A DNA stretch of 29,656 nucleotides. Origin: Fonticula alba ATCC 38817. Its lineage: Eukaryota > Protista > Nucleariida. This document shows, piece by piece, positions 1-29,656 of this stretch (the stretch's first letter is position 1; the number at the start of each line of letters is the position of its first letter). The translations under genes were made by a program, and so were the position numbers. The stretch lies in the NCBI GenBank assembly GCA_000388065.2, contig KB932304.1; one strand, written 5' to 3'. Under the pieces are notes generated by a model. It made no database searches. It saw nothing but the letters and a program-made list of their open reading frames with translations, and was not told the DNA's origin.

Positions 1-46
1 GACTCGAACCCATTCACAGGTTTTACCTGCTCTTTCCTAGACCTGA
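1..46 (-). ncRNA. tRNA-like element A (D-armless, no anticodon loop; 3' end cut off by window edge)
   Basis: Minus strand TCAGGTC-TAGGAAAGA-GCAGGT(AAA)ACCTGT-GA-ATGGG-TTCGAGT-C...; homologous to elements at 9337-9395 and 18417-18474. Confidence 0.65.
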
Positions 47-120
47 AAAAAAAAAAAAAATTATTAAATGTTTTTTATTTAATAAATAAAAAATCTATCA
101 GGGATTTTTTTTATGGTATC
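1..120. repeat. ~120-bp dispersed direct repeat, copy 1 (copy 2 at 9349-9467)
   Basis: Near-identical sequence containing the tRNA-like element, a poly-A tract, ttattaaatgtttttt and the hairpin AAAAAATC-tatcagg-GATTTTTT. Confidence 0.95.
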
Positions 121-151
121 TATTAAACAAAGCAGGGAGCTGTTTTGTTTA
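86..151 (-). terminator. Two stem-loops between orf214 and element A (terminator/processing-like)
   Basis: AAAAAATC/GATTTTTT (88-110) and AAACAAAGCAG-ggag-CTGTTTTGTTT (125-150, 11 bp with one G.T). Function is inferred. Confidence 0.45.
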
Positions 152-190
152 GTTTATATTCAGTTGTTTTGGTAGTAGATTTTTTAGTTA

Positions 191-835
191 TTACGTGAGT
201 GATATTGTGTTCATGTATGTTTGTACGATTAGGTCAATGTTTAGGTTGTCATTGATTGCTTGTTTTGCAATGAATGCAGTGTATCTGTTAATATCTACCA
301 TGTTTATAATATTTGAGTGTATAGGATCATTTATTTTGTTAAGTGTTATGTTTAGGTGTTTTGAGCCCTGTTCAAAGAATTCAGCTCTATTGTATTTTAA
401 GCATGCTCTGAGCATTGATATGTCCATCGTTGCATCATACTCTTTTAATATAAGTTTAAAATTATGAGTTCCGTTTTTAATAAGCCTTTCAGCTAGTTCT
501 TTATCTTCTTTTGTCAGTTCAACTTCCCAGCTGGGGTAGCCTAAATAGTTTGTAAGATCCTGACAACTTTTGTTTAAGATATTATCAGGGTTGTTTCCTA
601 ATTCTCCAAATACTGTTGTCTCTTCTAATGTTTTATTGTTTTTTTGAATTATGTGCCTCTGTAACTTCTCATAAATTTTTATCATTTTTTTTTTAGTTGT
701 ATGATCTATCTCTATAGTTTTAGTTGTATGATCTATTTGTATTATTTTAGTAACTTTATGAGCCTGAGTCTCTTCAGTTACTTTATTATAAAGTCCCAAG
801 TATTTAAACATAATATTTAAATAATATTTAATCAT
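191..835 (-). CDS. Orphan hydrophilic ORF, 214 aa (orf214)
   Basis: Long ORF in AT-rich DNA; ATG overlaps the rps4 stop by 8 nt; internal 27-bp tandem repeat (IQIDHTTKT/IEIDHTTKK); no family recognised. Confidence 0.7.
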   Translation of the reverse strand: MIKYYLNIMFKYLGLYNKVTEETQAHKVTKIIQIDHTTKTIEIDHTTKKKMIKIYEKLQRHIIQKNNKTLEETTVFGELGNNPDNILNKSCQDLTNYLGYPSWEVELTKEDKELAERLIKNGTHNFKLILKEYDATMDISMLRACLKYNRAEFFEQGSKHLNITLNKINDPIHSNIINMVDINRYTAFIAKQAINDNLNIDLIVQTYMNTISLT

Positions 836-3644: not shown

Positions 3645-4472
3645 ATAAAATTAAATAATAGACATAAGATAATTAATAACACAAGCAAACACCAAACAAT
3701 TTAAAAATCACAATTGGCTAACAGTAGCCAATATAACATACAACTATGTAAATAAAAACATACTCGTTATTCATTAACAAGACAACCCATAGTGTTCACC
3801 AACTACCTAAAACATACACAAATTAAGAACCGACCAATAAAAATTTTATATAAATACCTACAAATAAAACAATAAAAACACATAAAAACTCACTAAACAC
3901 CAATAATTATCATATTATAACAGACCCCATACAAATAGTAAACTTATTTACAAAAATAAATGCTAGGAATGAAAACGAATCTGAACATGATAATAAACTA
4001 AAAATAGTACCCATCAAGCTAGAAGAAACAAACACTGGAATAGATAGCCCCCCTAACATATGAAAGGTTTGAACACGTAGAAAACCACCGAATTTAGTTA
4101 GCCACAGAAGATGCAAAAACCCAAGTCTATTACCAAAGTAGTATATAAAACCCACCACATACTTTCAATCAGGGTTAATACATACCTGACCATCTACACT
4201 CATAACATTTAACAGCACTAAACACCAGATAATATAACCATAACAACCACCCTCTCCTAAAAACCAAACCAAAAACCATATAAAAATAAAACAGCCCTAA
4301 TAGACCTACTTACCATAGCCACTAAACATAAAATTAAAAACAGATAATACACCAAACACACACACAAACAGCCAATAAAAAACAACTACAGATATAAAAT
4401 AATAAACAAAGATACAAAATGATAAGACAATAAAACTCACCATAAGACCTAAAGCCAAATCTAATACATCTA

Positions 4473-4529
4473 GGAGTTTAATTGGAATCGAACCAATGAC
4501 CATATGCTCTACCACTGAGCTATAAACTC
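4473..4529 (-). ncRNA. Anticodon-less tRNA-like element (trnK-derived) overlapping the ccmF stop codon
   Basis: GAGTTTA-TA-GCTC(AGTGGTA)GAGC-A-TATG-GTC-ATTGG(TTCGATT)CCAAT-TAAACTC-C; acceptor and D-arm identical to trnK at 13315-13386; anticodon arm replaced by 4 nt. Confidence 0.85.
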
Positions 4530-6221
4530 TTTATTTATATTATTATTATGTTGTTTTTTGATGGTTTTGAATAGTGTTATGATTGTTATGATTGTTATAA
4601 TGTGTGGTGTGTAGTATTGCTTAATGTTTAGGAATTGTTGGTTTTTATTTATGATGAGTTTAATTGTGTGGTCGCTGTGGCCTAATATGCAGTTGTATAT
4701 TCTTGATTTGCTGATGTTTATGTTCTCTGTGTTTCGTATTATTAGTTGTATGTTTTCTGTGTTTTTGTTATTGTAGTATAGTATTTGTGCTATATTGTAA
4801 ATATATGGTTCTTGCTTACATGTTTGTAATTTATATAGGATTAGTTTATAGCCCTCTGATTCTAAACATTGTCCTACTGTTATAGCTATTTCTTCTTCAT
4901 GTTTTATACATAATGCTATTGTGATGTATAGTAAACCTCCTAAAATCATAGCATGGATTATTCTAAAGTTTTTAGATTTTAATAACTTTGATATAATAAT
5001 GGTGCTTACTGATGTATAGACTATATATGAAAGGTTATATGTATAGTATACAGAAATATATAATATTATTATATAAGATATATACTTTATATTATTGATA
5101 GAATTTATTAAAAGGGGTATTATAAGCATTATAAAACATGTAAATATTAATAATGGAAGCAGGACTATACTTTCAAAATCTTCAGGTTCTAACTTAAAAC
5201 CCACCATATTGGGGTGTAATGCATGAACTAAAAATAAAATTAAAGTTATTAGAAACAAAAGAATAGTTACAGAAAACAACAAGGATTTAGCCATTATAGT
5301 ATTAAATGATCTATACTCCATAAATGATACTTGTATTATATAAATTATAAACATTAATAAAACAAATATTAAAAAAATATAATTCTCAGATTCTGAAAAA
5401 CTATGAACGGACTGTAATACACCCGTCCTAACTAATAATAGAGACATTATAGGAGAAATCCAAAATATTATGAATATAATATTTTTTATATTAATAAACT
5501 TATTAAAATTACGATAAAAATATAAAAAATGAAGAATTAATACACTCAATATAAATATAAACATTAATAGGCCCTCTATAGGGTCCCAAGTCCAAGACAA
5601 AGTATTTATATCCCAGCTCCATAAAATACTAAACATCAATGAAGTTCCTAACAAATAAACAATGTGAGATAAAAACCTCTTATGCTCATAAAAAAATCTT
5701 TTTACTGAACTTACTTTTAATAAGCTCAGATAACTTAATGATAATACTAATATATATGAATAAGCAATATATAATATTATTGGATGAAAAATCATCATGG
5801 GGTTTATTAATTGCTGATTTATTTCTTCCGATACAAATTCTAAAGGAAATAAATATAATTCTATTGGTTGTAATATACCTATATATGTGATTATAAATAT
5901 TAATAATATTAATAACTCTTTTTTATAATTAGTAGAATTAATATCATTTAATTCTTGAATTAAATGGGTTCTTACAATAAAAGATATTATTATAATTATA
6001 AAGTATAATAAATAAATACTCTCAAAATTATTAAAAATTAAATTAAAAAACGTAATGATTGAATTATCTTTTTTTAAATCTGTTAACTCATCATGATAGA
6101 AAATTAAATTTATTAATAGGCCTAAAATACTGATGCTGCTTAATGTTTTAATGTTTTGTTTTATAAATAAAGGACTTAAAGTAATTATAGAAAGAGTTAA
6201 TAATTGTAGTGAATAAGTCAT
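4509..6221 (-). CDS. ccmF: Cytochrome c maturation protein CcmF (System I heme lyase), divergent
   Basis: LINPMMIFHPIILYIAY (cf. xQDPxLxIHPPxLYxGY), SWTWDPIE (cf. WFWDPVE), LVRTGVLQSVHSF (cf. LVRSGxLxSVHSF). Confidence 0.9.
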   Translation of the reverse strand: MTYSLQLLTLSIITLSPLFIKQNIKTLSSISILGLLINLIFYHDELTDLKKDNSIITFFNLIFNNFESIYLLYFIIIIISFIVRTHLIQELNDINSTNYKKELLILLIFIITYIGILQPIELYLFPLEFVSEEINQQLINPMMIFHPIILYIAYSYILVLSLSYLSLLKVSSVKRFFYEHKRFLSHIVYLLGTSLMFSILWSWDINTLSWTWDPIEGLLMFIFILSVLILHFLYFYRNFNKFINIKNIIFIIFWISPIMSLLLVRTGVLQSVHSFSESENYIFLIFVLLMFIIYIIQVSFMEYRSFNTIMAKSLLFSVTILLFLITLILFLVHALHPNMVGFKLEPEDFESIVLLPLLIFTCFIMLIIPLLINSINNIKYISYIIILYISVYYTYNLSYIVYTSVSTIIISKLLKSKNFRIIHAMILGGLLYITIALCIKHEEEIAITVGQCLESEGYKLILYKLQTCKQEPYIYNIAQILYYNNKNTENIQLIIRNTENINISKSRIYNCILGHSDHTIKLIINKNQQFLNIKQYYTPHIITIITIITLFKTIKKQHNNNINKEFIAQW

Positions 6222-6281
6222 TCCTTGGAGAAGCCTAGGTAAAATAATGCTCGTATGACCCGTACATAGTATTTATGGTAT

Positions 6282-6878
6282 TTATGTAGTGATTAGGTAT
6301 AGTGTGCCAAGGGCTGTGGCAATTGTTATGTTGTTTAAGATCATGTCTCCGTATGTGCTTGGGATAGAATTATAGAATTCTGATTTAGTTTTTATATTTT
6401 GGTGTATTGAGTTTATATCACCTATTGATATTTTTATAAAATAATAAAGTGTTGTTATTGTGATGATTGTTATAATGTTTAGTTTGTTATTATATGTTAT
6501 TATGTAATAGTAGCATATAATAAGTATTATATCTAATATTTTTTTATCTACTATAAAAAAATTACCCCATATAGCTTGTCCCCATATAATCCCACTTATA
6601 AGTGTTATTATAGAGATATTTAATAGTAGAAAGGAAATATTTTTTATTTTATGTGTAGTTTTAGTGATGTATAGTATACTAATGGGTATAAGGCATATAG
6701 TAACTATAATAGCTAATGGGACATGTACTGAGAACATGATAGTTAAATCACCCTGAGTTAAGTCTATAATAGGTTTTGTTTTAATTCTATTAATAAGAGT
6801 ATAACTTTCGGAGATTATGATTATTAATAGCAGACTTTCTATGAATTTTTTAAACATACTTTTGTTTTTTTCTTTCAT
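6282..6878 (-). CDS. ccmC: Cytochrome c maturation protein CcmC, divergent (start may be the ATG at 6857)
   Basis: [13 protein letters not shown] (cf. QGxxxRIxYxHVP), [16 protein letters not shown] (degenerate WWD motif), SIHQ (cf. TLHQ). Confidence 0.85.
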
Positions 6879-7248
6879 TTAGTAAGACTCTTCTTCCATA
6901 TTTAGATCTCCCTCTTTTTCTAGATAAAACAGGTGCAAGATCAAATTTCCCTCTAACTAGCGTATAATTAACTCCAGGCAGGTCTTTTATTCGGCCCCCC
7001 CTTATAAGAACATAACCATGTTCCTGTAAGTTATGACCAATACCTTTAATAGCTGCTGTAGCATAAAAACCAGTAGTAAATCTAACAGTCGCCACCTTTC
7101 TATTAGCTGAGTTAGGTTTTTTAGGATGTGCTATAAACACAGATGTACAAATACCCTTTCTTTGAGGACATTTATTCAACAATGGGGACTTAGACTCATT
7201 TTTTTTTTTTTTAACCCTAAACTTAACACACTGATTAAACGTTAACAT
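6850..7248 (-). CDS. rps12: Mitoribosomal protein S12
   Basis: [45 protein letters not shown] motifs. Confidence 0.98.
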
Positions 7249-8411
7249 TTAATTCTTTTTCTAAAAGAAAACAGCAATATCATAACATTTTCAAATATAC
7301 CTACTAATGGGTTTATGATTAAGAAATAGCTAAAGTAGAACACAGTCGAGTATACTCCGACTATAGTATATGGTGCTTCCATTGGAGCTCCACCTAAGTA
7401 TCCTAGGATTAAGAAGTTACCTACAAATATCCAGAATAAAAATTTATGTATTGGTCTAAATGTAGCAGATCTTACCCATGCAGTATGTAAGAAAGGTAAT
7501 GCTAATAGTATTAATATAGCCCCTATCATAGCTATTACTCCTCCTAGTTTACTTGGTATAGAACGTAATATAGCATAAAATGGTAAGAAATACCATTCTG
7601 GAACTATATGAGCAGGAGTTACTAATGGGTTTGCTGGGATATAGTTATCAGGGTGTCCCATTACATTAGGATAGAAGAATACGAAGAATGAAAATAATAA
7701 GAAAAATAATATAAATCCATGTATATCTTTTACAGTGAATAAGTCATGTAATCTAGTTTTATCCATATGGGATTCAAATCCCATAGGGTTATTAGATCCA
7801 TGCTTATGAAGTGCTAATATGTGCATTATAACAAGTCCAGCTAATAAGAAAGGAAGTAAATAATGAAGACTAAAAAATCTATTTAATGTAGCATTATCTA
7901 CAGAGAATCCTCCCCATACAAATTGAACAAAATCTTGTCCTATCCAAGGGATAGCTGATAACATGTTTGTTATAACTGTAGCAGCCCAGAAACTCATTTG
8001 TCCCCAAGGTAATACATATCCTAAAAAGGCTGTACCCATCATTATTAGGAAGATTATAACTCCAATAGACCAAACAAACACTCTTGGTTTAGTATAAGAA
8101 CCAAAATATAATCCACGAGCTATATGAACATAAACAAACATAAAAAAGAATGATGCACCATTAGCATGAGAGTATCTAATTAACCAACCTAAATTAACAT
8201 CCCTCATAATATGCTCAACACTAATAAAAGCCAGATCTACATGAGGAGTATAATGCATAGCCAATACAACCCCTGATGCTATCTGAATAACTAAGCAAAT
8301 ACCTAAAATAGAACCAAAATTCCAGAAATAAGAAATATTAGCCGGAAGAGAAGATTCAACCAATGCCGAACTCAAATGAGACAAGCCACTTAATCTTTTA
8401 CTAAGCTTCAT
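7242..8411 (-). CDS. cob: Apocytochrome b
   Basis: [47 protein letters not shown] motifs. Confidence 0.99.
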
Positions 8412-9183: not shown

Positions 9184-9336
9184 CTTTATAAAAATAGTAG
9201 CTAATTAGGCATAACCTAATTATGCTGCATAGCTACCCAGAAATAAAAAATTATTATTAATCTCTAAAACTCTTAAGACTCAACTTTTTCTTTTTTCTTT
9301 CTGTTCTCTCTAAGCTTCTGTACTTATTTTAAATGC

Positions 9337-9395
9337 GCCAGGCAAGGGGATTCGAACCCATTCGCAGGTAAAAACCTGCTCTTTCCTAGACCTGG
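9337..9395 (-). ncRNA. tRNA-like element B (59 nt, D-armless, tetraloop hairpin instead of an anticodon arm)
   Basis: CCAGGTC-TAGGAAAGA-GCAGGT(TTTT)ACCTGC-GA-ATGGG(TTCGAAT)CCCCT-TGCCTGG-C; acceptor CCAGGT/GCCTGG pairs; canonical T-loop. Confidence 0.75.
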
Positions 9396-9467
9396 ATAAA
9401 AAAAAAATTATTAAATGTTTTTTATTTAATAAATAAAAAATCTATCAGGGATTTTTTTTATGGTATC
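9349..9467. repeat. ~120-bp dispersed direct repeat, copy 2 (copy 1 at 1-120)
   Basis: Direct sequence comparison. Confidence 0.95.
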
Positions 9468-9498
9468 GTCTTTGTTTATATTTAATATTTGTTATTGT

Positions 9499-9702
9499 GC
9501 TGTATTAGATTTTTTTTTTTATTTTATCTCCTATCACTGAGCATTGTAATATTAGACCATTTGTTTCCTAGTGTTTTTTATTTTATTATTTGGGTTTAAA
9601 GCTGTATTAGATTTTTTTTTTTATTTTATCTCCTATCACTGAGCATTGTAATATTAGACCATTTGTTTCCTAGTGTTTTTTATTTTATTATTTGGGTTTA
9701 AA
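9499..9702. repeat. Perfect 102-bp tandem duplication (2 units)
   Basis: 9499-9600 and 9601-9702 are identical (gctgtattaga-T11-attttatctcc...tgggtttaaa). Confidence 0.95.
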
Positions 9703-10553: not shown

Positions 10554-12784
<2,231 letters not shown>

Positions 12785-12817
12785 TTATGATTTGTTTATA
12801 GTATATTGGTTGTTTAT

Positions 12818-12890
12818 GGCGGACTATAGGATTCGAACCCATGACCAACAGAATCACAATCTGGTGCTCTACCAACTGAGCTAAGCCCGC
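12818..12890 (-). tRNA. trnH: tRNA-His(GUG)
   Basis: Cloverleaf; acceptor GCGGGCT/AGTCCGC; loop TTGTGAT; C73; the -1 base is T, not G. Confidence 0.95.
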
Positions 12891-12901
12891 ATAATTTTAG
12901 T

Positions 12902-12973
12902 TTGAGAAAATGGGATTCGAACCCATGCGTCATGAAATCAAAATCCATTGCCTTACCACTTGGCTATTCCTCA
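12902..12973 (-). tRNA. trnQ: tRNA-Gln(UUG)
   Basis: Cloverleaf; acceptor TGAGGAA/TTTCTCA; loop TTTTGAT. Confidence 0.95.
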
Positions 12974-13229
12974 ATGGAGTTTCCTCCTTATATTTTGTTA
13001 ATATTAGTTCTTAAATTTAGTTAATTTTTATTAGAATTAGATAAAACTTCTCTAACTAATGATACTTTTTCCATATTAACACAATATGAATATATCATGT
13101 TATAACTAATTGTAAAAAATACACAAAACATAAAAGAAAGATTAAAAAAAGTTAATAAATCTACTTGTGGCATAAAATATAATATATAATGGCTATATTA
13201 TCTGGAAGATTATTAATATATTATCTATT

Positions 13230-13312
13230 TGAGGGCGATGGGATTCGAACCCATGCTCACATTCGTGGATAGATTTACAGTCTATTGCTTTAAACCGCTC
13301 AGCCACACCCTC
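13230..13312 (-). tRNA. trnY: tRNA-Tyr(GUA)
   Basis: Cloverleaf with long variable arm; loop CTGTAAA. Confidence 0.95.
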
Positions 13313-13314
13313 AA

Positions 13315-13386
13315 TGAGTTTAACAGGACTCGAACCTGCGACCAACGGATTAAAAGTCCGCTGCTCTACCACTGAGCTATAAACTC
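13315..13386 (-). tRNA. trnK: tRNA-Lys(UUU)
   Basis: Cloverleaf; acceptor GAGTTTA/TAAACTC; loop CTTTTAA. Confidence 0.96.
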
Positions 13387-13506
13387 TTATTTATAAAGTT
13401 AAATAACCCCCATTCAGTCTAATTTATTTTACTATTCCTTTACGATCTAGTGTCGAACAGATTTAAGCTTCTAATATAATAGCATTTATTTAGGCTATAA
13501 CGTAGG

Positions 13507-13555
13507 AATTTCCTAATCCTGAAGAGATTGTCGTATCTTGCCCTGTTAGGAAATT
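13507..13555. promoter_or_regulatory. Inverted repeat in the divergent trnK/trnL spacer (candidate bidirectional promoter or origin)
   Basis: AATTTCCTAA (13507-13516) / TTAGGAAATT (13546-13555), with inner GAGAT/ATCTT pairing; lies between head-to-head genes. Confidence 0.4.
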
Positions 13556-13582
13556 ATTAGTTATGTTGTTATTCAAAAAATA

Positions 13583-13667
13583 GCCCGCTTGGTGGAACTG
13601 GCAGACACGACAGACTTAAAATCTGTTTTCAGTTTATGAAGTATTGGTTCGAGTCCAATAGTGGGTA
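13583..13667 (+). tRNA. trnL: tRNA-Leu(UAA)
   Basis: Cloverleaf with long variable arm; loop CTTAAAA. Confidence 0.95.
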
Positions 13668-13669
13668 TT

Positions 13670-13741
13670 GGGCTTATAGTTTAGTGGTAAAACGTTCCAC
13701 TCATGATGGATACTACGTGGGTTCGATTCCTACTAAGCCCA
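13670..13741 (+). tRNA. trnI: tRNA with CAU anticodon, probably tRNA-Ile(CAU, lysidine type)
   Basis: GGGCTTA/TAAGCCC acceptor and GTTT/AAAC D-stem resemble organellar trnI(CAU); loop CTCATGA. Identity is inferred. Confidence 0.8.
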
Positions 13742-14061
13742 ATGCTCCCGATCTTTTGATCGTAGCATACCACTATGATAGTTTATGGATGTATCTTTCG
13801 CACACACACATGCTCAGATATTACCTATCTCTTAATATTGCTTTTAGGCCACACAATATAATTTATATTTCATTTTTTTAAATGAGATTTGTTTTTTAAG
13901 TATTTATATTATAGTTTGTTTTAATTATAAAATTTTTTTTTATGAAAAATATTTTATTTGTGTATGTTCCAGCTAGTGAGACACTAGTGTGGGTTGTTAG
14001 TGATTAATTCAGTTGTGGATCAAAATTTAGATTTAGTTATTTTACTATTAGATTTATATTT

Positions 14062-14940
14062 ATGTATAATAGGTTAGATTTAATGGAGTTAAAAGCCTTA
14101 TATGAAAACATGATAGCCCCGATTTTATCTATTATTTTATTTATAGTTAAATTTTTGATGTATATAATTGGAATAATTTATATATCTAAAATACAACCAG
14201 TTTATATATCTGAAGTTTCATCGGACTATAATAATAAGTATTATTATTATGTTATTATTGTGATTTTTATTTTGGTTGTATATGGTTTGATAAAGATTTT
14301 GGGGTATTTTAAACCAGGTCTTTTTAGTATGAGGGGGTTTGTTTTTCCTTCTGCTTATTTGGGGGCTTATAATCTGATTATTTTTTTAGCTGGTAGGTTT
14401 TTCTCTAGGTTTTTTATTAGGTTGCTGTCTTCTTTGGTTTGGGGTCATGGTCTGACGGGTTATTATGCTTTTAGGGTAATTTTGGCTTTGTTTCCTTTTG
14501 TTTTTTTGGTTTGTTTTTTTAATTTTATTAATTTTGGGGGTTCGTTGGGTTATTTGTCAGTATTAGTGCCTGTGGGGTTTGTTATTTGGATTTTTAAATG
14601 TTTTTTATATTCATTTAAAAAGTTTGTTTTAACTAACTTGGAAATGATGTCTGACTTGTTGTTTGTTTATGTGTTGGGCTCATCTCCAGAGGAGGAAGTT
14701 GCTCTTATTGACATTGAGAAGTTGAATTTTAAATTGACTTCTCTTGCTTTTACCTTAGAGTTTAGAGAGGAGGACATTCCTCAGCTAAAACAAAAGTGGC
14801 TTTTGTTTGCTAGTGGAAAGTGTTCTATTTCTTTATATGACAATTATTTTAGGTTGGTTGGCTATGTTGCTATAGCCCTTAAAATCTTGGCTTGGGCGAA
14901 TATTTGTATTATTATGATGGATATGGGGGATGTTTCGTAG
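14062..14940 (+). CDS. Orphan multi-TM membrane protein, family A copy A1 (292 aa)
   Basis: Several hydrophobic spans; shares YIIxxIY and PxxFxxWxxK/RxxxxSFxxFV with orf275, orf208 and orf137, and KLTxxA with orf275. Confidence 0.8.
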   Translation: MYNRLDLMELKALYENMIAPILSIILFIVKFLMYIIGIIYISKIQPVYISEVSSDYNNKYYYYVIIVIFILVVYGLIKILGYFKPGLFSMRGFVFPSAYLGAYNLIIFLAGRFFSRFFIRLLSSLVWGHGLTGYYAFRVILALFPFVFLVCFFNFINFGGSLGYLSVLVPVGFVIWIFKCFLYSFKKFVLTNLEMMSDLLFVYVLGSSPEEEVALIDIEKLNFKLTSLAFTLEFREEDIPQLKQKWLLFASGKCSISLYDNYFRLVGYVAIALKILAWANICIIMMDMGDVS

Positions 14941-15413: not shown

Positions 15414-15414
15414 A

Positions 15415-15488
15415 GAGAATGTAGCTCAACTGGATAGAGCGATAGCCCTCTTAGCTATAGGTCATGGGTTCGAGTCCCATCATTCTCG
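15415..15488 (+). tRNA. Chimeric tRNA-like gene: Arg(UCU) D/anticodon arms on an Asp acceptor/T-arm, with aberrant anticodon loop
   Basis: GAGAATG-TA-GCTC(AACTGGATA)GAGC-G-ATAGC(CCTCTTA)GCTAT-AGGTC-ATGGG(TTCGAGT)CCCAT-CATTCTC-G; compare trnR 26369-26442 and trnD 26128-26201; has C33 and U37. Confidence 0.8.
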
Positions 15489-16203
15489 TTTTTATATATT
15501 TTATAGTTCTTTTATGTATATTATAAATTGCGTTGTATTTTTAATTGTTATATTAACAGTTAGTACATTTATGTTTTAAAACTAATTATTTAGTAGATGT
15601 TTAGGTGGTCTTTTATGATCTTTAATGCTATTTAATTCGTGTTTTGTTTTTTATTTTATGTTATTTCTTATATTTTAATTTTAGCTATTTTTAGGTGTGT
15701 ATTTTGATTATATAATTATTTGGGTTTTTTTTATATAAGGGGGTGTGTACAAGAGTATAAATCTATTAGCTGTATGTTTACTATAGAAGATATCATACAT
15801 TTATAAAAACTAATGGTATTTAATTAAATGATAGTTTTTATGGTTGTTTTGTCTGTTGATGTACTTTTCTTAAGTTTGTTTTTATGGTTTATGTTGTTAT
15901 ATTACTATCTGTTCTTTTGTTGAATCTGAATTTGTAGGGGGTTTATTATCTTGTTGGGTTTAATTGTCATAGTTCGTTGATTTAGTTTGTTATTTGCTGA
16001 GTTTGTTATCTGATAGCTTTTGTTTTGTTCAAGTATATTTTTCTATCTATGTCTTTGTACGTAGAGGTTACTTAGTTGGTTTTGCTCTATGGTTATGTTA
16101 TTAGTTGGTTGTTATTCTTTTAGTGACTGTAACAATTGTTATAGTATAAATAAAAATTTTATATAAGTTTTATTTAAAAAGTTAAGGGGTATACTATACT
16201 ATA

Positions 16204-16263
16204 TTATTTTATTTGTAGATTTTCTTTTAAATTAAAGAATTCTATAACAAGTTTCTTTCTCAT
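16204..16263 (-). pseudogene. Remnant 5' end of a family B gene (psi-B4)
   Basis: ATG 8 nt after the reconstructed A2 stop; MRKKLVIEFFNLK aligns with the orf202 start MKGDLIKHVFNLR; stop after 19 codons. Confidence 0.55.
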
Positions 16264-16271
16264 TTTGTTTT

Positions 16272-17016
16272 TTAAAGAATTATAATTAAGGAAATAAAGC
16301 TGAATGCTAATATTCTTGTATATATAATTATATCCTGATATTTTAATAAAGTGTCTCTAGGTTTAATACTGTAAAGAGCTAGTGCTTGTTCAACTAATTG
16401 GGGGGGTATGAGTTGAATTTAGGCCGCTTTCAATCGCCGATTTAGTTAGCCCTACAATTATTTCCTTAGTAATTTGATCCTTTGCTACACGCTCGAGCTC
16501 TTGTTCATCATACACTAGTAATTCTTTTAAAGCTTTTATTTTGCTTTCTATAAAATTTTCAAAAGATATTCTTACCATCCTAATAATCCAAATAGACAAA
16601 TTAAAAGGTACTATTAATATTACATATTGTGAAGATATTAAACCTAAAAAGAATAATATTAATGCTATTAGGTTTATAATAGGTTGGGTTATATCTGTAA
16701 TAATTTTCAGTATACTTAATAGGCTAGAGCTGCTTCGGCTTAATCTTACATGCATTATAAATTTATTGTAATATTCCAGCCTATAGTAATTTCCTATTAG
16801 ATGAAATAATACTTCAATAGCATTCCTTGATGTAATTGGTAATCCTTCAGTACCGAGTTTAAACTTTACTCGTAAATATTTTACGTATATAAAATATCCT
16901 ATTAAAATAATAAGTACAAAGATGTATTTCCATTTAGAATAAACAGGTAAGTCTCCTACCATTTTAGCAGTATGAAATGGTAGATATATTAATTGTATAA
17001 TATAAATAAATATCAC
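16272..17016 (-). pseudogene. Family A copy A2 (orf208 plus frameshifted C-terminus, ~247 aa if repaired)
   Basis: Gap-free paralog of orf275; GTG start only. An extra C in the C7 run (G7 at 16400-16406) shifts the frame; the continuation QLVEQALALYSIK...IYTRILAF matches orf275 DLVEKLLMLYKFK...FYARVFMW. Confidence 0.85.
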
Positions 17017-18416
17017 AACTACACAACATATTTAAATATAATATAATACCCCCCATTATTAACCCCTTATATATAATATTCAAGAACTCCCCTATAACAT
17101 AGGTATAAAGTAGGTACATTACTAATACATAATAAATACTAGATTTATACTAACCAAGATATTTTTACTTAAGCAGGACAGATGCATAAAACATGCACAT
17201 AATATTTAATATACGCACAAACCAACAAAACAGCCCTATAACAAACCCCACCTCAATTAATTTAAACTAAGCTACAATAATATAAAAGGAAGAATCAACT
17301 AGAACCCATAATATATACTTACTTTATAACTTACACTAGTATATTTATAAGAGACACCTAAAACACTATAAGTTATAAGTTTTATACTAAAATATAATAT
17401 ATTAACAGCATAGAAATATACTCGTATATATTATGGGCAGATTACCTGCAGAACAAATATCTAAATAAAAATAGACAGGCATAAATTAAGCTATAGATTA
17501 CAGTGAAGATGCCTATCACATAATATATACTACCAGAAATGTTTACACCTATTAATTTATAACACATAAACCCCCCCCACTAAACCAGTGTTATAGGCAC
17601 CTATCCTAATACCATATTCATAAAATACTAAAATTAGTATATTTCACCAGAGGATTCTAACTCACACAAATCATTTCTTTTACCGATAAAAGCCAGATTT
17701 AATATTCATATTTTCAAGAAAGGTTTAAGGTATTTACAGTAATGCTATATTATATACACTCAAATTAAATCACTTGAGTTTATATAAACCTAAATATATT
17801 TAACTATACTGGAAAATACATACACTATAATCTGAATTTCATAAGCCAGTAGTTCTAACAGTAACAGAGCTTAGTTAAGATTATAAAGTACTTTAGATTA
17901 CCCTCAGCCAACAAACCTTTATAGAGATGTAACCATACAGCTACTAACTTCTAACCTTTAGAAGTTATTGCCATACTCACCCTGGTAGAACACCAGCTTG
18001 TCACCAATACTAGGAATTATATAAAATAACCACTTGTTCTTCGTTACAAGCCCAACCGTATTTTAATACATAATATAACCTAATAATAGGTATATTATAA
18101 ATAAACTCAATATACTACTAACAGAATAAAACAACAAGAAATATAGACACAAAGCCAAAAACAACACTAAAACTACCATAATAGCCAATAAACATTATTA
18201 TATTAGGCCCAATACAACACTAAACTTATAATACCCCCTATTAATTAAATAAACACTAAAGCATTACTAAACTACTACTGATTTAACACTAAAACTTATA
18301 AATTAAAACAACCAAAACAAGACAATATAAAACATTCTAATATTTATTTTTTTAATCATAAACAAAGCCGACCCAAGAGGAGCCTAACCCATAAGCATAT
18401 ATCCCATTATAAAGCG

Positions 18417-18474
18417 ATCAGAGAATAGGATTCGAACCCATTCGTAGGTATTTACCTACTCTTCCAGACCCTGT
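18417..18474 (-). ncRNA. tRNA-like element C (58 nt)
   Basis: ACAGGGT-CTGGAAGA-GTAGGT(AAAT)ACCTAC-GA-ATGGG(TTCGAAT)CCTAT-TCTCTGA; compensatory changes relative to elements A and B. Confidence 0.7.
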
Positions 18475-18488
18475 AAAAACTTTATAAA

Positions 18489-19216: not shown

Positions 19217-19219
19217 TTT

Positions 19220-20047
19220 TTATGTAAACAGGACAAAACATAAGAATATCCACATAAAAACTCTAGCATAAAATAATTGCTCGAAAAACGAGTTTGAATA
19301 TTGTGAACCTTTAAATTTATAGAGCATAAGTAGTTTTTCTACAAGGTCGGACACTTGGTTCATAGTAACGCCACCCTCATGAGCTTCTTTCGTTAACTTG
19401 ACTACTATTAATTTACTGCTCTCATTGATGGCTATTCGTTTGATTTCAGCCTCATCATAAAGCATCAAACTCTTTAAAATTCCGATATAAGTTTCTACAA
19501 AAGTATCAAATGAAATATACCAGATTCTGATAACCCAAAGGCAAAAGTTTATGGGGATAATAATTAGCATGTAGCTCGTGCTAATTTGCCCTATCACAAA
19601 TAAGAATATTAATAGAAGATTTACCATTGGATGTATAGCCCCTATATAAAATATAAATAAGTTCATGACATAGGTACCTTTACGCCATTTTTCAATATAA
19701 TTTAAGAATCTATTATAATATTCGTCCCTATGCTTATTTCCTACCAAATGAAAAAATACTATTAAAGCCATCTTAGCAGATATTACAGGCCCCTCTTCTG
19801 GAGAATAAACGTATTTACGAAAATATTTAATATATGTTAAATATCCTATTAAAATAAGTAGTACAAGAATATATTTCCATTTAGAATATGATGCTAAGTC
19901 CTCTACCATTTTAGCAGTATGAAAAGGTAGATATATTAATTGTATAATATAAATAGTTAATGGGATTGTAATTGGAGTCAATGACACTGTATAGTAGAGA
20001 GGATCCTTTTTAAACTCTGTAAATATTGCCATACACTTAATTTTCAT
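19220..20047 (-). CDS. Orphan multi-TM membrane protein, family A copy A3 (275 aa)
   Basis: Intact ATG ORF with several hydrophobic spans; paralog of orf208, orf292 and orf137. Confidence 0.85.
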   Translation of the reverse strand: MKIKCMAIFTEFKKDPLYYTVSLTPITIPLTIYIIQLIYLPFHTAKMVEDLASYSKWKYILVLLILIGYLTYIKYFRKYVYSPEEGPVISAKMALIVFFHLVGNKHRDEYYNRFLNYIEKWRKGTYVMNLFIFYIGAIHPMVNLLLIFLFVIGQISTSYMLIIIPINFCLWVIRIWYISFDTFVETYIGILKSLMLYDEAEIKRIAINESSKLIVVKLTKEAHEGGVTMNQVSDLVEKLLMLYKFKGSQYSNSFFEQLFYARVFMWIFLCFVLFT

Positions 20048-21903
20048 TATAAATTTATAAACATCAGCTTTAGTCTAAGATTGTATATTATACATATATA
20101 TATATAATATTCAAATCTCATTAAACACCAAATAATAATAACATAAAATAAATACAAGAATTTTAATACAAAATATAACGCTAATAAATTCTAAATATAA
20201 AATTAATGTATTTATTAATCCTTAAGGTCAGGGTTGCTAAGGTCTTGTCAGACGGGTTAGTTTCTCTGGGGCTTATGGTACACCTTATTTAGTGTGGTTT
20301 ATTCACCCTATATAAGTTATATTTGATTTTTTTATAGGATATTGGTGTGGTAGGTGCTGGTTCTATAGCTGTGTATTTGATGGCTATCTTCTCCATTTTT
20401 ACTGAGGTTTGTGTGCTCTGTGTTATCTGAGTGTTAGTGTTTTCCGTGCTTTGGATGTTTCTGTGTTTCAGCTTATAATTTTTAGTTTTGGTGTGTTAGA
20501 CTATATGGTAGTGATTAGTTATGTTGTTATTATATATATTCTATATCTTAATATATATTATTTGTTTTATTGTGGTGGTATTTATGGTCTCTAGGGTGTA
20601 AGAGTTTAGCTTCTATTCTAATACTTTTTAGGTGTGTATTTTCTTTAGCTGTTTATTAGTATTTATAGACTTGTAGGTTTTTCTAGTTTGTTTAATATAT
20701 TCTAGTTAAGGCTGTGGTGTTTGTAATATGTACGGTTTAGATGGTGAAGTAACAATCTTTATAGGAGTATGGGGATTATATTTAATTGTTTTATCGTAAT
20801 CTTAGTTGTGTATAAATTACCCTCTAGAGGCTCTATGTTGAGAGAAGGGCTGGTTATGTATTAGTTTTATATTTTAAGTATCTGTTGTATTGATTGTAGT
20901 CTCTAGCCTTTTTAATTTAGATTTGATTATAGGAAATAATTTTTGACTGTGGTTTATACTTGTTTGTATTTACAAAATTTAAGGTTTAATTTTTATTTAA
21001 TCTATTGGGTATATTAGTATTAGATCTAGAGGTATTGTTATGGTGTTTTAGTACATTTTTTATTCAGTTATGTATGTTTTCCTGTTACTTCAGTAATTTT
21101 ATTATAAATTACTGTTATAGTATACTTATACTGTGATCTAATTATAGTAGCTTGTGGTTTGGTACAGTTAGTGTACGGACTAACAGGCTGTCTATACCTA
21201 TTATTTATAATCTGTTGGCAGTGGTAAGATTCTATAGGGCTATTTTTATGTTGAACCTGATGGAGATTTTCCTCTGTTATGTACTGCTTAGTCTACTACA
21301 ATAGCTCTATAGCTAACATAAGAATTTTTGTTATGTTTTATTAAGTACTATTGGCATAGTTTCTATTTGTGTATCAGCAGCTGTTTTATTCGTATAGTTA
21401 AGCTGTATCTGGGCTTAGTAGTGCTCTGTGTTTATTATCCTGTTATGAGATGTATTCTCATGGTTTGTTGTTATAATGTATGTACAATGGGTATATTATA
21501 TATAATATACCTTTCTATATGGTGTTCTAAGAATTTAAATTATGCCTTGTTATAGCGTGTTTCCTTGAAATTATTAAGCTGGAGCTTTTATTTAGGTTAC
21601 TATACTTTCTTTTAATAATGTTTATGATCTTACTTAGAACCATTATTTATTTTATTTGAGTGGTGTATAGTTTCGGTACTTAAGTTTATTTTGGTTTTAT
21701 GTTCATTTCTGTGTTTTATGAGTGTAATAAAGTTAAGTTTTAGTTGAGTGCTAATTCAGGGTGTTTTTTTTTTATTTAGTTAGGTCTTACTATGGGCTGT
21801 TTAGCTGTAATTTGCTTTTGGTGTGTACTATGTTTTGTTGTTTTGGCCTATAGGTCCTTGCAGAATATTAAAGTATTGTTTCATTAGTCTGGTGGTATTT
21901 TAT

Positions 21904-22719
21904 TTAGTTTAGTGTTGGGCTGTATGGCCAGTAGTATACGCTTATAAACATGAATATCCATACTATATCCACGAAGTGGTAGTACCATGCACAAGTGTCG
22001 AATCCTACATGGCTTGAGTTTGTGTTTAATCCGTATACAGTTCTGTATAGGCATGTTATTAAATAGATTGTTCCTATTATTATATGTATCCCATGAAATC
22101 CTGTACACATAAAGAATGTAGATCCATATACAGAGTCAGCTATGCTGAATGTAGAGTCTATGTATTCTAAGAATTGAAGACCTGTGAATGACATTGCTAA
22201 GATGATAGTTATTAATAAAGACACAGTTGTATGAGGTTTATTTGCTGTAATAATAGCGTGATGTCCCCATGTTAATACAACTCCAGATGCTACTAGTACT
22301 ATCGTGTTTAATAATGGAACACTTAAAGGGTTCAATGCTTGAATTCCTTTTGGAGGCCAAACCACACCTAAATCTACTGAAGGAGCTAAGCTTGAATGAA
22401 AAAACGCCCAAAATAAAGCTACGAAAAACATTAGTTCAGATACTATAAATAAAATAAACCCAATTTTTAATCCTCTTTGTACTAAGTATGTATGACACCC
22501 AGATAATGTACTTTCTTTTGAAACATCTACAAACCAACAAAAAAATGTTAACAATACTAATAAAAACCCTATTAATAATGTGCTAGATCCACCATTGAAT
22601 CCATGCATAAACAGAACAGCAGATTTCATGCTCAACATTAATGAAAAAGCCATGAAAATAGGCCATGGACTGTTATCTAAAATATGATAAGTATGATTTT
22701 TATATCTCATAAAAATCAA
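21904..22719 (-). CDS. cox3: Cytochrome c oxidase subunit 3
   Basis: HTYHILDNSPWP, FIVSELMFF, FWAFFHSSLAP, VWPPKGI, PLLNT, TGFHGIH, AWYYHFVDIVW. Confidence 0.99.
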   Translation of the reverse strand: MIFMRYKNHTYHILDNSPWPIFMAFSLMLSMKSAVLFMHGFNGGSSTLLIGFLLVLLTFFCWFVDVSKESTLSGCHTYLVQRGLKIGFILFIVSELMFFVALFWAFFHSSLAPSVDLGVVWPPKGIQALNPLSVPLLNTIVLVASGVVLTWGHHAIITANKPHTTVSLLITIILAMSFTGLQFLEYIDSTFSIADSVYGSTFFMCTGFHGIHIIIGTIYLITCLYRTVYGLNTNSSHVGFDTCAWYYHFVDIVWIFMFISVYYWPYSPTLN

Positions 22720-27413: not shown

Positions 27414-28378
27414 AACTAATAAAAAAAAAACAAGAAAATGTCCAAAAATAAAACGTTATTCAATAAAAAAACACCAACAAACAAACCAAAAAACTCTTAG
27501 AACATACACGCACAAAACAAAATAATCACAACCATTACACTGGAAGAACCAAATCTAAACGTTAAATTATAATATCAAGAACATACAAAACAAGCACAAA
27601 ACAACTACATAAAAACTGTTATATATCCATATAAATTATATACATAAGATAAATTATACGAACCTAACCCATAAGCACATGCTTAACCATAAACCACTCA
27701 GGCAATAGAATACTTCCACAATACACAACATTAAGAGTATTCAGTGTAATATAATACCCACTCGTACAGTAAACACTACCAGAGTATAGGAGAGTATCTA
27801 AACAAGATGTCAGAGAGAAAGAAAAAAACAATTACTTGAGACAACAAAATAAAACCACAAGAAAACAGATGGAGTACCCACAAGTAACTTCGGCACAGAA
27901 GCGGACAACGTTTAACCACCAATGAGCAGAGGTGAATATTGGAAAACATATGTAAATTCTATAACAATTTACCAATAAGCTGTTTAGATACAGCAACCTA
28001 CTAGAATTGGGCAAAGCGTTATAAACATCACTCAGACCAGTAAAATAGGGGAAGTAACACAATACCCAGATACCCAATGGAAAGGAAAATAGAGAACGAT
28101 GGGAATCAATGAAGTAAACCCGGCAAACAGAACACCTCTCACAAATGGGTGAGGAACATCAACAAAATAATAAAAAATTATTAAATGTTTTTCTTGTTTT
28201 TGCATTTGTTTTTGTTCTTTGTCCGGAAAATTTTTGTTCTAATTGAGTAAGGTTTGTTTAGTGTGCTTTGTTATTATATAGTTATTCTTTAGAGATTTAA
28301 CTAGTATTAGAAGTATATCTGAAATCAGATAGTTATTATTTTAACTCCTATGGTTTTAATTTATCTCTATCACTCTTG

Positions 28379-28642
28379 TTATTTTATTTTATTTAAGGCT
28401 ATTTTAATTTCACCTAAATTCATTAAATCTATAGAAGAATATTCCTGAATTGCTGAAAACAACAATTCAGGGCTATTCTTGTCAATTTGTTGACATAACC
28501 TAGCCTGTTGTTTTAAAAGGTACCTAGTTTTGCTCGTATCTTCCTTTAAATACTGCTTCTCAATTATTAATAAGTCTTTGCTAAAAACGGTTGTTTGTCC
28601 ATATGGTTTAAATTTATAATCTAATATGGGCCCTTTAGACTC
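28379..28642 (-). pseudogene. Start-less 87-codon frame: C-terminal remnant of a family B gene (psi-B5)
   Basis: QTTVFSKDLLIIEKQYL aligns with orf202 QHIVLSKELVKIDNKEL, and NLGEIKIALNKI with SLIELKVFLDKI; in-frame stops upstream. Confidence 0.7.
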
Positions 28643-28688
28643 TTAGATCTTTTACTAGAGAGAGGTTATATCACAAGAAAGTCAATTA

Positions 28689-29222
28689 TTAGTCAATATC
28701 AGAGCAATCTTTATTCTCTAAACCCTCCAAATCAAAGCATGATTGGATAGGCTTACTAAAATGACCTTCATACTCTAAAAGCATATTTTTTGCTATCAAT
28801 AGTCTTGGCTTATCTAAAAGTGTCTTGTTTCTAAAATAAGTTATTAAGACTATGTCTTGCCCATAGATATCCTCATAAAAGCGCCCATTTTTTTCCCATA
28901 TCTCAAAATGACTGCTTTTTATATAAAGGGGTTTTGTTGGAGTTACTCCATATTGTGGTAAATTTTTAAGGGCTAAATCTAGTTGATAGGACAAACTATC
29001 AACCCTTAAGTGCTTTATAGAGTTAGAGTGAGTCATTTGTTGTATAACATGATACTTATTTAAATATTTATCTTGATAGCAGATGAGAGGGTGTTGGACA
29101 TTAACATTCGATTCGCTAGCTCTTTCTGCGTAAAGGGCTCTAAACTTAGGCTTTATCAATCCGAATTTTAAACCTGTATTTTGTTTAGTTGTACTTAGGA
29201 CAATCCTGGTAATATTTTTCAT
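28689..29222 (-). CDS. Orphan soluble protein, probable family B copy B3 (177 aa from the ATG overlapping the A4 stop)
   Basis: ATGA stop/start overlap with A4; VLSTT shared with orf202; HPLICYQDKYLNKYHVIQQMTHS aligns gap-free with HILAVLETKEEEKSLIIANYTST. Confidence 0.7.
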   Translation of the reverse strand: MKNITRIVLSTTKQNTGLKFGLIKPKFRALYAERASESNVNVQHPLICYQDKYLNKYHVIQQMTHSNSIKHLRVDSLSYQLDLALKNLPQYGVTPTKPLYIKSSHFEIWEKNGRFYEDIYGQDIVLITYFRNKTLLDKPRLLIAKNMLLEYEGHFSKPIQSCFDLEGLENKDCSDID

Positions 29223-29656
29223 ATGACTTGTAGTAACCAATAACACAAAAAAAGTCTACATAGCACTATGTACTTAGTAGTTAACCCTCTTGATACTTCG
29301 AGGTTTTTTTCAAATTCTAAATGACCTCTAGAAACTCTAGCTAGCATCATCCAGTCTTTTAAGACCGTATTCACACAAAGTTGCTCGTTCTCTTGTGAGT
29401 TCGCTCCCTCCTTGATACTAAAAACAGCAGTTGTGGTAACCCTGTCTATAGAAGTCCCTTTCTCCAGATTAAGGTCAAGTAACCCTGTATAATCACTATC
29501 CCTCCAATCTACAAAAATTTCGAAACTCTTTATAAAATTGTTTATTAACCAGCATCCAAAGCTAACGCACACACAAAATTTTAGCAAAAATACCGGCAAA
29601 TAACCCATTACTATCAGTACATAAAGAGTCATAGAAACACCCTTAAAAATAAAAAA
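29219..29656 (-). CDS. Family A copy A4, C-terminal part (frame stays open to the window edge)
   Basis: VSFGCWLINNFIKSFEIFV matches VGFVIWIFKCFLYSFKKFV of orf292; LKDWMMLA vs KQKWLLFA; upstream codons FFIFKGVS are open. Confidence 0.75.
   Translation of the reverse strand, partial: FFIFKGVSMTLYVLIVMGYLPVFLLKFCVCVSFGCWLINNFIKSFEIFVDWRDSDYTGLLDLNLEKGTSIDRVTTTAVFSIKEGANSQENEQLCVNTVLKDWMMLARVSRGHLEFEKNLEVSRGLTTKYIVLCRLFLCYWLLQVI

Follow-up and report, generated by a model that had tools for sequence, protein, structure and literature searches.

The first 29,656 nt of the 45-kb mitochondrial scaffold of Fonticula alba (GCA_000388065.2, KB932304.1), hereafter the window, bear a G+T / A+C sawtooth that is real and very unusual: the G/T-rich strand alternates every 1–8 kb, also in the middle of genes, and the upward steps at which the plus strand turns G/T-rich probably mark many start sites of DNA copying or RNA-making. 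We document what the pattern is and which sign it has, that neutral sites carry it, that it is rare, and that tRNA-like elements and repeats co-locate with it; the literature that we searched yielded no description of such a kilobase-scale skew sawtooth. The further part of the scaffold that was examined, record 31901–37203, lies beyond a run of N at 29657–31900.

A sawtooth of strand skew that reverses inside genes

Keto skew, (G+T−A−C)/N, computed for the plus strand in 300-nt windows, ranges from +0.57 to −0.52, and GC skew and TA skew covary (r=0.74, n=98 windows), as is expected of skew domains of the N type. Despite the location of the majority of genes on the minus strand, the mean over the window is −0.007. 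Skew is strongest at third codon positions, where it reaches 0.84, and in ORF-free DNA, which argues for a mutational origin; in orphan ORFs the first and second codon positions track it as well. Alternative genetic codes were also considered and rejected, the standard code giving the best fit. Steps were scored as the difference between the right and the left flanking window (w=250), a score that never exceeded 0.41 across 200 shuffles. Six upward steps lie above every shuffle at this width, and at w=150 this holds for three upward steps and for none of the downward ones. The upward steps, with their scores, are as follows.

about 150: 0.40 (w=150)
4527: 0.99 (w=250), the largest in the window; neutral-site step +1.40
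6247: 0.36 (w=250)
9448: 0.47 (w=250)
14270: 0.42 (w=250)
15450: 0.51 (w=250)
18405: 0.36 (w=250), weak
20225: 0.57 (w=250)
28184: 0.56 (w=250)

Piecewise-linear segmentation of the neutral sites (third codon positions and non-RNA intergenic sites) gave 13 segments, 10 of them with negative slopes, and 10 of the 12 steps between them are upward; this model was better by 20 BIC units than the best piecewise-constant one. The handedness, that is upward steps and falling slopes, is kept after reverse-complementing. A skewness test on the skew increments gave P=0.06–0.12, and the 'sharp up, gradual down' shape is only moderately supported. The amplitude of the teeth does not increase with their length, units of 1.2 and 1.7 kb reaching +0.57 and +0.45, as high as the 8-kb unit. 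The sawtooth had been noticed by eye in an earlier note, and the keto-skew profile, the shuffles and the neutral-site segmentation all bear it out; it is present at third positions and intergenic sites, where that note had proposed to compute it. Most of the switch points listed in that note were recovered as steps, but the one placed at 13500–13900 is a slow rise, with the sharp step at 14220–14270, and that at 15450 had been missed. The spacing, put at 2–5 kb, measures 1–8 kb. Reversals between the switches do exist, but at 23–77% of unit length, so that 'midway' describes them only loosely.

Three conserved genes with reversals are the following.

7242..8411, minus strand: cob; sense third-position skew from +0.53 to −0.23 (block standard error about 0.17)
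11159..12784, minus strand: cox1; one whole tooth, neutral-site skew from +0.61 to −0.62
21904..22710, minus strand: cox3; sense-strand third-position skew from +0.25 to −0.47, with the flip near 22300–22590

Synonymous usage in cox1 flips around 11770–11830, NNT/NNC codons passing from 81/19 to 28/44 at about 11770 (P=2.5e-8), and in cox3 from 29/7 to 14/26 at about 22300 (P=7.5e-5), the cut points having been picked post hoc in both cases. A check independent of the chosen cut points is provided by 80 control cox1 genes, a metagenome scan for close relatives having yielded distant cox1 genes only (81% identity or less): third-position skew differs between the first and the last part of the F. 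alba gene by 0.71, as compared with a mean of 0.02 (SD 0.10, maximum 0.28) in the controls, which places it 6.6 SD beyond them. The flips that had been read by eye in these two genes are thus upheld. Usage also flips within cob, orf938 and orf570 (cut points again picked post hoc), and at the 3′ end of orf570 sense-strand third-position skew falls to between −0.56 and −0.61. The borders of cob carry upward steps in third positions only, at 7245 (0.59) and 8405 (0.42), and third-position skew resets where cob, rps12 and orf203 begin.

In orf203 throughout, and in the 3′ portions of cox1, cox3 and orf570, G/T-richness lies on the antisense strand. Cassette paralogues on opposite strands differ in sense-strand skew, in line with the independence from coding strand that had been claimed at the outset. 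Nevertheless, the teeth of the plus-strand cassette are displaced toward a G/T-rich sense strand, so that gene direction has some effect. Steps lie directly upstream of the minus-strand genes orf938, orf570, cox2, cox1, orf208, orf275 and orf81, and almost every step falls at a gene 5′ side or a module border. Diverging genes, as a bidirectional promoter would have, occur only at about 13400–13580, most steps lying within tandem arrays.

tRNA-like elements and repeats at the steps

Each of the four interior tRNA-like elements has an upward step no more than 54 nt away (permutation, P ~1e-4), a co-location that had been suggested together with this very test. It recurs beyond the window, where a step at record 35100 sits beside a tRNA-Ala-like gene (35122–35194). 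Each of six tRNA-like elements is found at the 3′ end of the adjacent upstream gene and on the same strand, and several borders bear degenerate tRNA-like elements that probably also serve as signals for RNA processing. Other steps fall at short dispersed repeats or at either end of a 1,481-nt identical repeat. The features at and between the steps are listed below.

1..120, minus strand: composite repeat: tRNA-like 3′ part (1–45), A-run, and AT hairpin whose loop is T-rich
3645..4472, minus strand: ORF-free block upstream of orf938; minus strand T.50, G.22, A.20, C.08
4473..4529, minus strand: tRNA-like element that lacks an anticodon arm and overlaps the orf570 stop codon (Rfam tRNA, 51 bits)
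6221..6282: orf570–orf198 spacer, with the upward step at about 6247
9326..9467, minus strand: tRNA-like element (9326–9394), A-run and AT hairpin, with the upward step at 9448
12735..14215: 1,481-nt repeat, perfectly identical to record 32275–33755
15415..15488, plus strand: chimeric tRNA-Arg/Asp-like gene at the 3′ end of the plus-strand cassette
15489..16389, plus strand: ORF-free block; plus strand T.51, G.16, A.27, C.07
17031..18405, minus strand: ORF-free block; minus strand G/T-rich
18406..18479, minus strand: tRNA-like element followed by a hairpin, with a weak upward step at 18405–18510
20048..20225, minus strand: conserved leader of orf275, a cassette gene, with the upward step at 20206–20225
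20226..21903, plus strand: 1.7-kb ORF-free block downstream of cox3; plus strand G/T-rich
28164..28192: third copy of an A-run-to-T-run motif (others at 47–75 and 9394–9422), with the upward step at 28177–28184

At 1–120 the G/T-rich turn begins at about 65–150, and this segment matches 9349–9467 at 92%; the scaffold thus begins within a repeat of another step. The largest step of the window falls at the right edge of the element at 4473..4529 (4527–4530), and both borders of the 1,481-nt repeat carry upward steps, at 12690–12783 and 14220–14270. The step at about 15450 sits where the 3′ ends of plus- and minus-strand genes converge. The orf275 leader is an 82% match, inverted, to the orf186 leader elsewhere on the scaffold, and contains a 36-nt repeat (20167–20202) at which short-read assembly graphs branch. 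Inside the neighbouring ORF-free block lie a copy, in plus orientation, of the orf292 leader motif (20304–20355) and a segment, 21147–21383, that occurs in an undirected metatranscriptome contig.

No motif is common to all the steps, and no k-mer is enriched at them after multiple-testing correction. The top k-mers at the steps merely mirror their G/T-richness. Hairpins, sought at every step, are missing at 6247, 20215 and 28180, as are tRNA-like elements, and stable folds are confined to the tRNA-like subset, so that an origin sequence or structure shared across the steps was not found. Rfam searches of the skewed blocks for hidden RNA genes returned none (E up to 1), and block 15489..16389 has no homology to any ORF family. 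The ORF-free skewed blocks were also considered as decayed cassette copies; tblastn, tblastx, sensitive blastn and family HMMs against six-frame fragments recovered known members only. A search for large palindromes or inverted duplicates, as possible sources of antisymmetric skew, was likewise negative.

Proposed diverging starts of DNA synthesis and rival explanations

The mechanism that we favour, albeit tentatively, is that DNA synthesis starts at the steps and diverges from them, leaving the displaced strand open to deamination. The window would then consist of at least 10 domains of 1–8 kb each, with a strand-asymmetric process that exposes single-stranded DNA diverging at every border and exposing the plus strand on the right-hand side and the minus strand on the left-hand side. 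The borders would be starts of DNA synthesis, either leading-strand initiation zones or, equally, second-strand priming sites on a displaced strand. Deamination of the exposed DNA (C to T, A to G) would record the exposure at weakly constrained sites; its effect would wane with distance and meet the opposite effect from the next border, giving a zero crossing inside whatever gene is there. The tRNA-like elements could fold into a structure for priming, or be cleaved to give an RNA 3′ end. Both single-strand exposure as the cause and DNA synthesis, rather than transcription, as the process are what we infer.

Several observations point to DNA synthesis. T and G rise jointly on one strand, as C-to-T plus A-to-G changes on one strand predict. 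Bacterial origins display a switch to G/T-rich composition and the displaced strand of vertebrate mtDNA is G/T-rich; the handedness of the sawtooth has the sign of both. The amplitude is like that of replication-driven vertebrate mtDNA and unlike the gene-strand skew of control contigs, the skew ignores gene direction, a promoter at 15450, among converging 3′ ends, would serve no gene, and tRNA-like elements co-locate with steps both in the window and at record 35100. The 5′ to 3′ polarity of the switch, from A/C-rich to G/T-rich, the presence of the signal at neutral sites and its independence from gene strand are also those by which origins are defined from skew. On the other side stand the lack of a motif or hairpin common to all steps, the statistically modest extra sharpness of the upward steps, and some influence of gene direction in the plus-strand cassette teeth. 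Moreover, amplitude does not grow with tooth length, contrary to a pure single-stranded-time model with many second-strand priming sites, and steps at gene 5′ sides and module borders would equally fit one promoter per module. Origins 1–1.7 kb apart, one per cox1 end, would to our knowledge be denser than in any organelle, which also counts against this mechanism. The proposal of the earlier note, bidirectional origins or promoters, is supported in part: sign and geometry agree with it, the plus strand being G/T-rich to the right of the steps and the minus strand to the left, but there is no common motif or hairpin, and several steps prove to be borders of repeats or gene modules.

Second in rank, and somewhat doubtful in our view, are divergent promoters at module borders: the non-template strand, exposed in transcription bubbles or R-loops, would deaminate, with an effect decaying with distance and opposed by antisense transcription from the next border. 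Geometry and sign would be identical to those of replication, and the steps just upstream of the minus-strand genes named above, like the third-position resets at the starts of cob, rps12 and orf203, count in its favour. The plus-oriented orf292 leader motif lies 90–140 nt to the right of step 20215 and faces away from the minus-oriented orf275 leader, and RNA contigs, although undirected, include part of the ORF-free block downstream of cox3. However, the antisense strand would need to be more exposed than the sense strand throughout orf203 and in the 3′ portions of cox1, cox3 and orf570, step 15450 lies at converging 3′ ends, no promoter-like motif common to the steps was found, and net sense-strand skew is absent over the window, unlike in control mitochondrial contigs. 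It is unlikely that the teeth reflect instead the polarity of transcript units, G/T-richness of the 5′ sense strand being combined with a reverse process that starts from the tRNA-like 3′ end and turns the antisense strand G/T-rich near 3′ ends; this could, for example, be cDNA or primer synthesis from the tRNA-like 3′ structure followed by gene conversion. All six tRNA-like elements do lie 3′ of the upstream gene on its own strand, the strongest antisense skew, at the orf570 3′ end, adjoins such an element, and element-bounded units match teeth in both gene orientations. Yet the strand agreement is expected anyway of co-transcribed tRNA relics, steps 6247, 20215 and 28180 have no tRNA-like element, and no reverse transcriptase or similar gene was seen, the orphan ORFs being without Pfam match.

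Distinctly unlikely are short linear or subgenomic molecules that end at the steps and are copied inward from both ends by strand displacement, with the scaffold as their master or concatenated form. Inward copying of the adenovirus/phi29 type, known from linear viral genomes, should give one tooth per molecule, and the teeth would fit this exactly; the scaffold begins inside a repeat present at another step, short-read graphs branch at 18266–18313 and 20167–20202, at short repeats adjoining steps 18450 and 20215, and contigs often end at repeats near steps. On the other hand, branching at 30–40-nt repeats is ordinary in recombining mtDNA, a separate molecule would be needed for each of cox1, cob and rps12, and contigs from independent samples cross the borders colinearly, L004 (18284–23237) over 18450 and 20215 and L002 (10400–13367) over cox1. 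The same contigs speak against the concatenation of small replicons that had been considered in the earlier note. A mosaic history, in which segments with skew acquired elsewhere or in another orientation were joined by recombination at short repeats and the steps are rearrangement scars, appears very unlikely. It would account for the steps at about 12735 and 14220–14270, which are the borders of the 1,481-nt identical repeat, for the cassette leader edge next to step 20215 and for the dispersed repeats at most steps, but the smooth reversals in intact, conserved cox1, cob and cox3 must be products of change in place, inverted duplicates and decayed cassette copies were not found, and random joins predict equal numbers of upward and downward steps. 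Hardly credible, finally, are selection on protein or RNA composition and an assembly artefact: first and second codon positions of orphan ORFs do follow the skew, but synonymous and ORF-free sites carry the strongest signal, the ORFs across which the flips run are intact, and the sequence is the same in independent samples (99.7–99.97% identity). Palindromes, inverted duplicates, decayed copies, protein composition and misassembly thus do not explain the pattern, and double-strand breaks with 5′ resection at the steps, rejected by inference alone, would predict the opposite sign.

If the steps are initiation sites, then sequence alone would yield a testable replication or transcription map for the mtDNA of the sister lineage of fungi, and a role would be found for its puzzling tRNA-like relics. 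It is possible, if far from assured, that copying of F. alba mtDNA begins at densely arrayed start sites, roughly one every 1–8 kb with at least 12 in the 35 kb seen, and that many of these sites consist of degenerate tRNA genes which also punctuate the RNA. In that case this mtDNA would be the first organelle genome to display its complete initiation map in kilobase-scale, N-domain-like skew, a skew strong enough to flip codon usage within cox1, cob and cox3. The pattern shows mutation pressure that is strong enough to turn synonymous codon usage around, and to alter amino-acid composition, inside individual conserved genes. Phylogenetic analyses with these genes are affected, since composition varies inside a gene, as are gene finding on A/C-rich strands and skew-based origin inference in other organelle genomes.

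Comparison with known systems

Two control contigs of protist or fungal mtDNA (L043, L031) share with F. alba a G/T-rich sense strand in the 5′ parts of genes, but their skew is a square wave that follows gene orientation, without intragenic reversal. Plant mitochondria contain tRNA-like 't-elements', and tRNA genes have been proposed as alternative light-strand origins. The degenerate tRNA-like structures at the 3′ ends of coding units in F. alba are similar, and the idea of single-stranded DNA that folds and primes is common to both; unlike here, those elements are not known to be linked to a local reset of strand composition, and in F. alba the role is a candidate one. Yeast mtDNA has multiple ori/rep elements, which are promoter-primed bidirectional origins. 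F. alba, on the fungal side of the tree, likewise has several dispersed repeated elements in one mtDNA, which could be both promoter and origin, but its elements are tRNA-like relics or AT hairpins instead of GC clusters, and no promoter motif was found. We know of no report of a skew sawtooth in yeast mtDNA.

In vertebrate mtDNA, a skew gradient arises from strand-displacement replication, with a discontinuity at the light-strand origin OL (PMC3269012; PMC4182315, PMC3787671). F. alba shares the G/T-richness of the displaced strand (presumed to be displaced in its case), the large amplitude, a synonymous-site gradient that runs across genes and ignores their borders, and a reset at a stem-loop among tRNA genes, as at the vertebrate OL. 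Vertebrates, however, have one tooth of one sign per genome, whereas here at least 10 zero-crossing teeth occupy 30 kb with reversals within single genes, and the amplitude does not scale with unit length as a single-stranded-time gradient would. In mammalian nuclear genomes, the upward jumps of skew N-domains have been interpreted as replication origins (PMC2764438, PMC3320577). The F. alba pattern has the same sawtooth in both TA and GC skew and the same handedness on either strand, and its fall between jumps may be roughly linear as in those domains; unlike the N-domains, which are megabase-sized features of a few percent in nuclear chromatin, it operates in an organelle, at the kilobase scale and with skews of up to 0.5–0.8.

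Shape of the skew profile

Keto skew of the plus strand, (G+T-A-C)/N in 300-nt windows, ranges from +0.57 to -0.52, and GC skew and TA skew are correlated (r=0.74). Comparison of adjacent 250-nt windows gave the following upward steps, at which an A/C-rich left gives way to a G/T-rich right.

Upward steps (position, size; maximum of 200 shuffles, 0.41)
4527, 0.99
20225, 0.57
28184, 0.56
15450, 0.51
9448, 0.47
14270, 0.42
6247, 0.36 (under the shuffle maximum)
18405, 0.36 (under the shuffle maximum)

The largest downward change in this comparison is -0.46. With 150-nt windows, the upward steps at 4529, 28177 and 20206 are above every shuffle, as is no downward step, and a skewness test on non-overlapping skew increments gave P=0.06–0.12. 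That rises are sharp and falls gradual is only moderately supported. The earlier note had named every step listed except 15450, which it missed; where it put a switch at 13500–13900 the skew does rise, slowly, the sharp part lying at 14220–14270. Its spacing of 2–5 kb does not hold, since the units between upward steps measure 1–8 kb, and the reversals that it placed roughly midway between switches are zero crossings spread over 23–77% of unit length, five or six of nine falling within genes.

For neutral sites (third codon positions plus intergenic sites outside RNA genes), dynamic-programming segmentation showed a piecewise-linear model with 13 segments to be better by 20 BIC units than the best piecewise-constant model; slopes are negative in 10 of the 13 segments and 10 of the 12 steps are upward. 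Third-position skew on the sense strand declines smoothly within cox1 (+0.40 to -0.44), cox3 (+0.25 to -0.47), cob (+0.53 to -0.23) and orf938 (+0.72 to -0.36). The flips of synonymous usage noticed by eye were borne out, NNT/NNC passing from 81/19 to 28/44 near 11770 in cox1 and from 29/7 to 14/26 near 22300 in cox3. Third positions alone show extra upward steps at the tandem gene borders 7245, 8405 and 11165 (0.4–0.6; about 2.4–3.4 standard errors). The strongest skew is that of ORF-free blocks, with T.47, A.26, G.18 and C.09 on the G/T-rich strand. The skew is mutational in origin, not coding. It is also positional, because paralogous cassette genes differ in skew by location. Neither palindromes or inverted duplicates nor decayed cassette copies were found that account for the oppositely skewed blocks.

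Gene content and sequences at the steps

The window covers 1–29656 of scaffold KB932304.1 (45,189 nt; assembly GCA_000388065.2), has 30% G+C and is best fitted by the standard genetic code. It holds cox1, cox2, cob, cox3, atp9, rps12, a bacterial-type large-subunit rRNA gene, 20 tRNA genes and many orphan ORFs, about 31% being ORF-free and non-RNA-coding. In Pfam, orf198 gives a weak match, below the cut-off (E=2.8e-5), to cytochrome c assembly proteins, and orf938 and orf570 give none. Directly past the window end lies a 2.2-kb run of N (record 29657–31900), and an apparent 893-aa ORF spanning it was rejected as an artefact of the gap. Neither nad genes nor a small-subunit rRNA gene was found in the 35 kb seen (window 1–29656 and record 31901–37203).

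tRNA-like elements
1–45, minus, tRNA-like element
4473–4529, minus, tRNA-like element
9326–9394, minus, tRNA-like element
15415–15488, plus, chimeric tRNA-Arg-like gene
18406–18479, minus, tRNA-like element

The proposed co-location of switches and tRNA-like elements withstood permutation: all four interior elements lie at most 54 nt from a step (P about 1e-4, random placement in non-coding DNA). Past the N gap, plus-strand cassettes make two further teeth, one beginning at a tRNA-Ala-like gene (record 35122–35194), an out-of-sample repeat of this association. The steps near 65, 9420 and 28180 have in common a motif in which an A-run leads to a T-run; two of its three copies belong to a 120-nt repeat, which also has an AT hairpin whose loop is T-rich. 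No k-mer or hairpin common to all steps was found.

The steps at about 12735 and 14220–14270 are the two borders of a direct repeat of 1,481 nt, perfectly identical between window 12735–14215 and record 32275–33755, which contains trnH, trnQ, trnY, trnK, trnL, trnM and the 5′ ends of cox1 (50 nt) and orf292 (~50 codons); the copies diverge abruptly from 14216. Such a pattern suggests that gene conversion or recombination is still going on. Step 20215 adjoins the conserved leader of the cassette gene orf275, and the orf292 leader motif recurs in plus orientation 90–140 nt to the right of this step. A ~45-nt motif, about 73% identical and in the same orientation at 13850–13900 (upstream of plus-strand orf292) and 20304–20355 (start of an ORF-free G/T-rich block), could be a leader or promoter-like element. 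Two copies of a 102-nt tandem repeat, 87–93% identical, occupy 9472–9675, directly right of step 9448. The ORF-free region downstream of orf203 carries a perfect 32-nt inverted repeat (10134–10165/10400–10431, 234-nt spacer), and an independent contig has its end at precisely 10400.

Contigs from independent samples are 99.7–99.97% identical and colinear over cox1 and the steps at 18450 and 20215, which argues against misassembly and also against a simple set of small separate replicons, the concatenation suggested earlier. Short-read graphs branch at 30–40-nt repeats adjoining two steps (18266–18313, 20167–20202). Some environmental strains have a 153-nt tandem duplication (20048–20200) in the orf275 leader, beside a skew step; a soil metagenome and a second run have contigs with its junction, 20200 to 20048. 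At 17570, in an ORF-free block, a homopolymer varies in length, environmental strains having 4 or 6 extra C. Metagenomes of soil, sediment, compost, sludge and gut contain near-identical mtDNA (93–95% of sampled 31-mers; window 15000–21000), as do DNA runs labelled with other organism names; the Fonticula amoeba, or close strains, is widespread or else a common contaminant.

Possible sources of strand exposure

Deamination of single-stranded DNA leads to a gain of T and G; this is established for bacterial leading strands and, in vertebrate mtDNA, for the displaced heavy strand (reviewed in PMC3269012). At an upward step, the G/T-rich strand is the plus strand on the right and the minus strand on the left; given such a gain, each step would therefore be a point of diverging strand exposure. 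Break-and-resection hot spots were rejected, since they predict the opposite skew sign. The exposure may stem from diverging DNA synthesis, through leading-strand starts or second-strand priming on displaced strands. Alternatively, transcription diverging from the steps would yield the same geometry, and because a tooth is unchanged by reverse-complementing, neither element nor gene orientation can tell the models apart. The RNA evidence consists of undirected metatranscriptome contigs, which cover cox3 and 21147–21383 of the ORF-free block downstream of it.

We favour DNA synthesis as the likeliest source because the G/T-rich strand is the antisense one throughout orf203 and in the 3′ parts of cox1, cox3 and orf570, no net sense-strand skew remains over the window, the amplitude is comparable to that of vertebrate mtDNA, and step 15450 sits where 3′ ends converge. 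It would, however, imply extremely dense start sites, and the steps lack a common motif; moreover, nearly all lie at a module border or on the 5′ side of a gene, and longer units do not have greater amplitude.

Controls and known parallels

Among 80 cox1 genes on metagenome contigs, third-position skew of the first part minus that of the last part had a mean of 0.02, an SD of 0.10 and a maximum of 0.28, as compared with 0.71, or 6.6 SD, in Fonticula. A spread of local skew like the window's was found in none of 29 control contigs (at least 9 kb), the most skewed of which show an ordinary square wave tracking gene orientation. The sawtooth skew is thus unusual. The pattern is real and striking, a strand asymmetry of apparently new form that is probably linked to replication or transcription. 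In the literature searched we found no organelle case of kilobase-scale, high-amplitude, many-toothed skew with codon usage reversing inside genes. Among the closest parallels are the gradient of vertebrate mtDNA, which forms a single tooth whereas Fonticula mtDNA has many, and the 'N-domains' of mammalian chromosomes, which are of megabase scale (PMC2764438, PMC3320577) whereas the Fonticula teeth are of kilobase scale.
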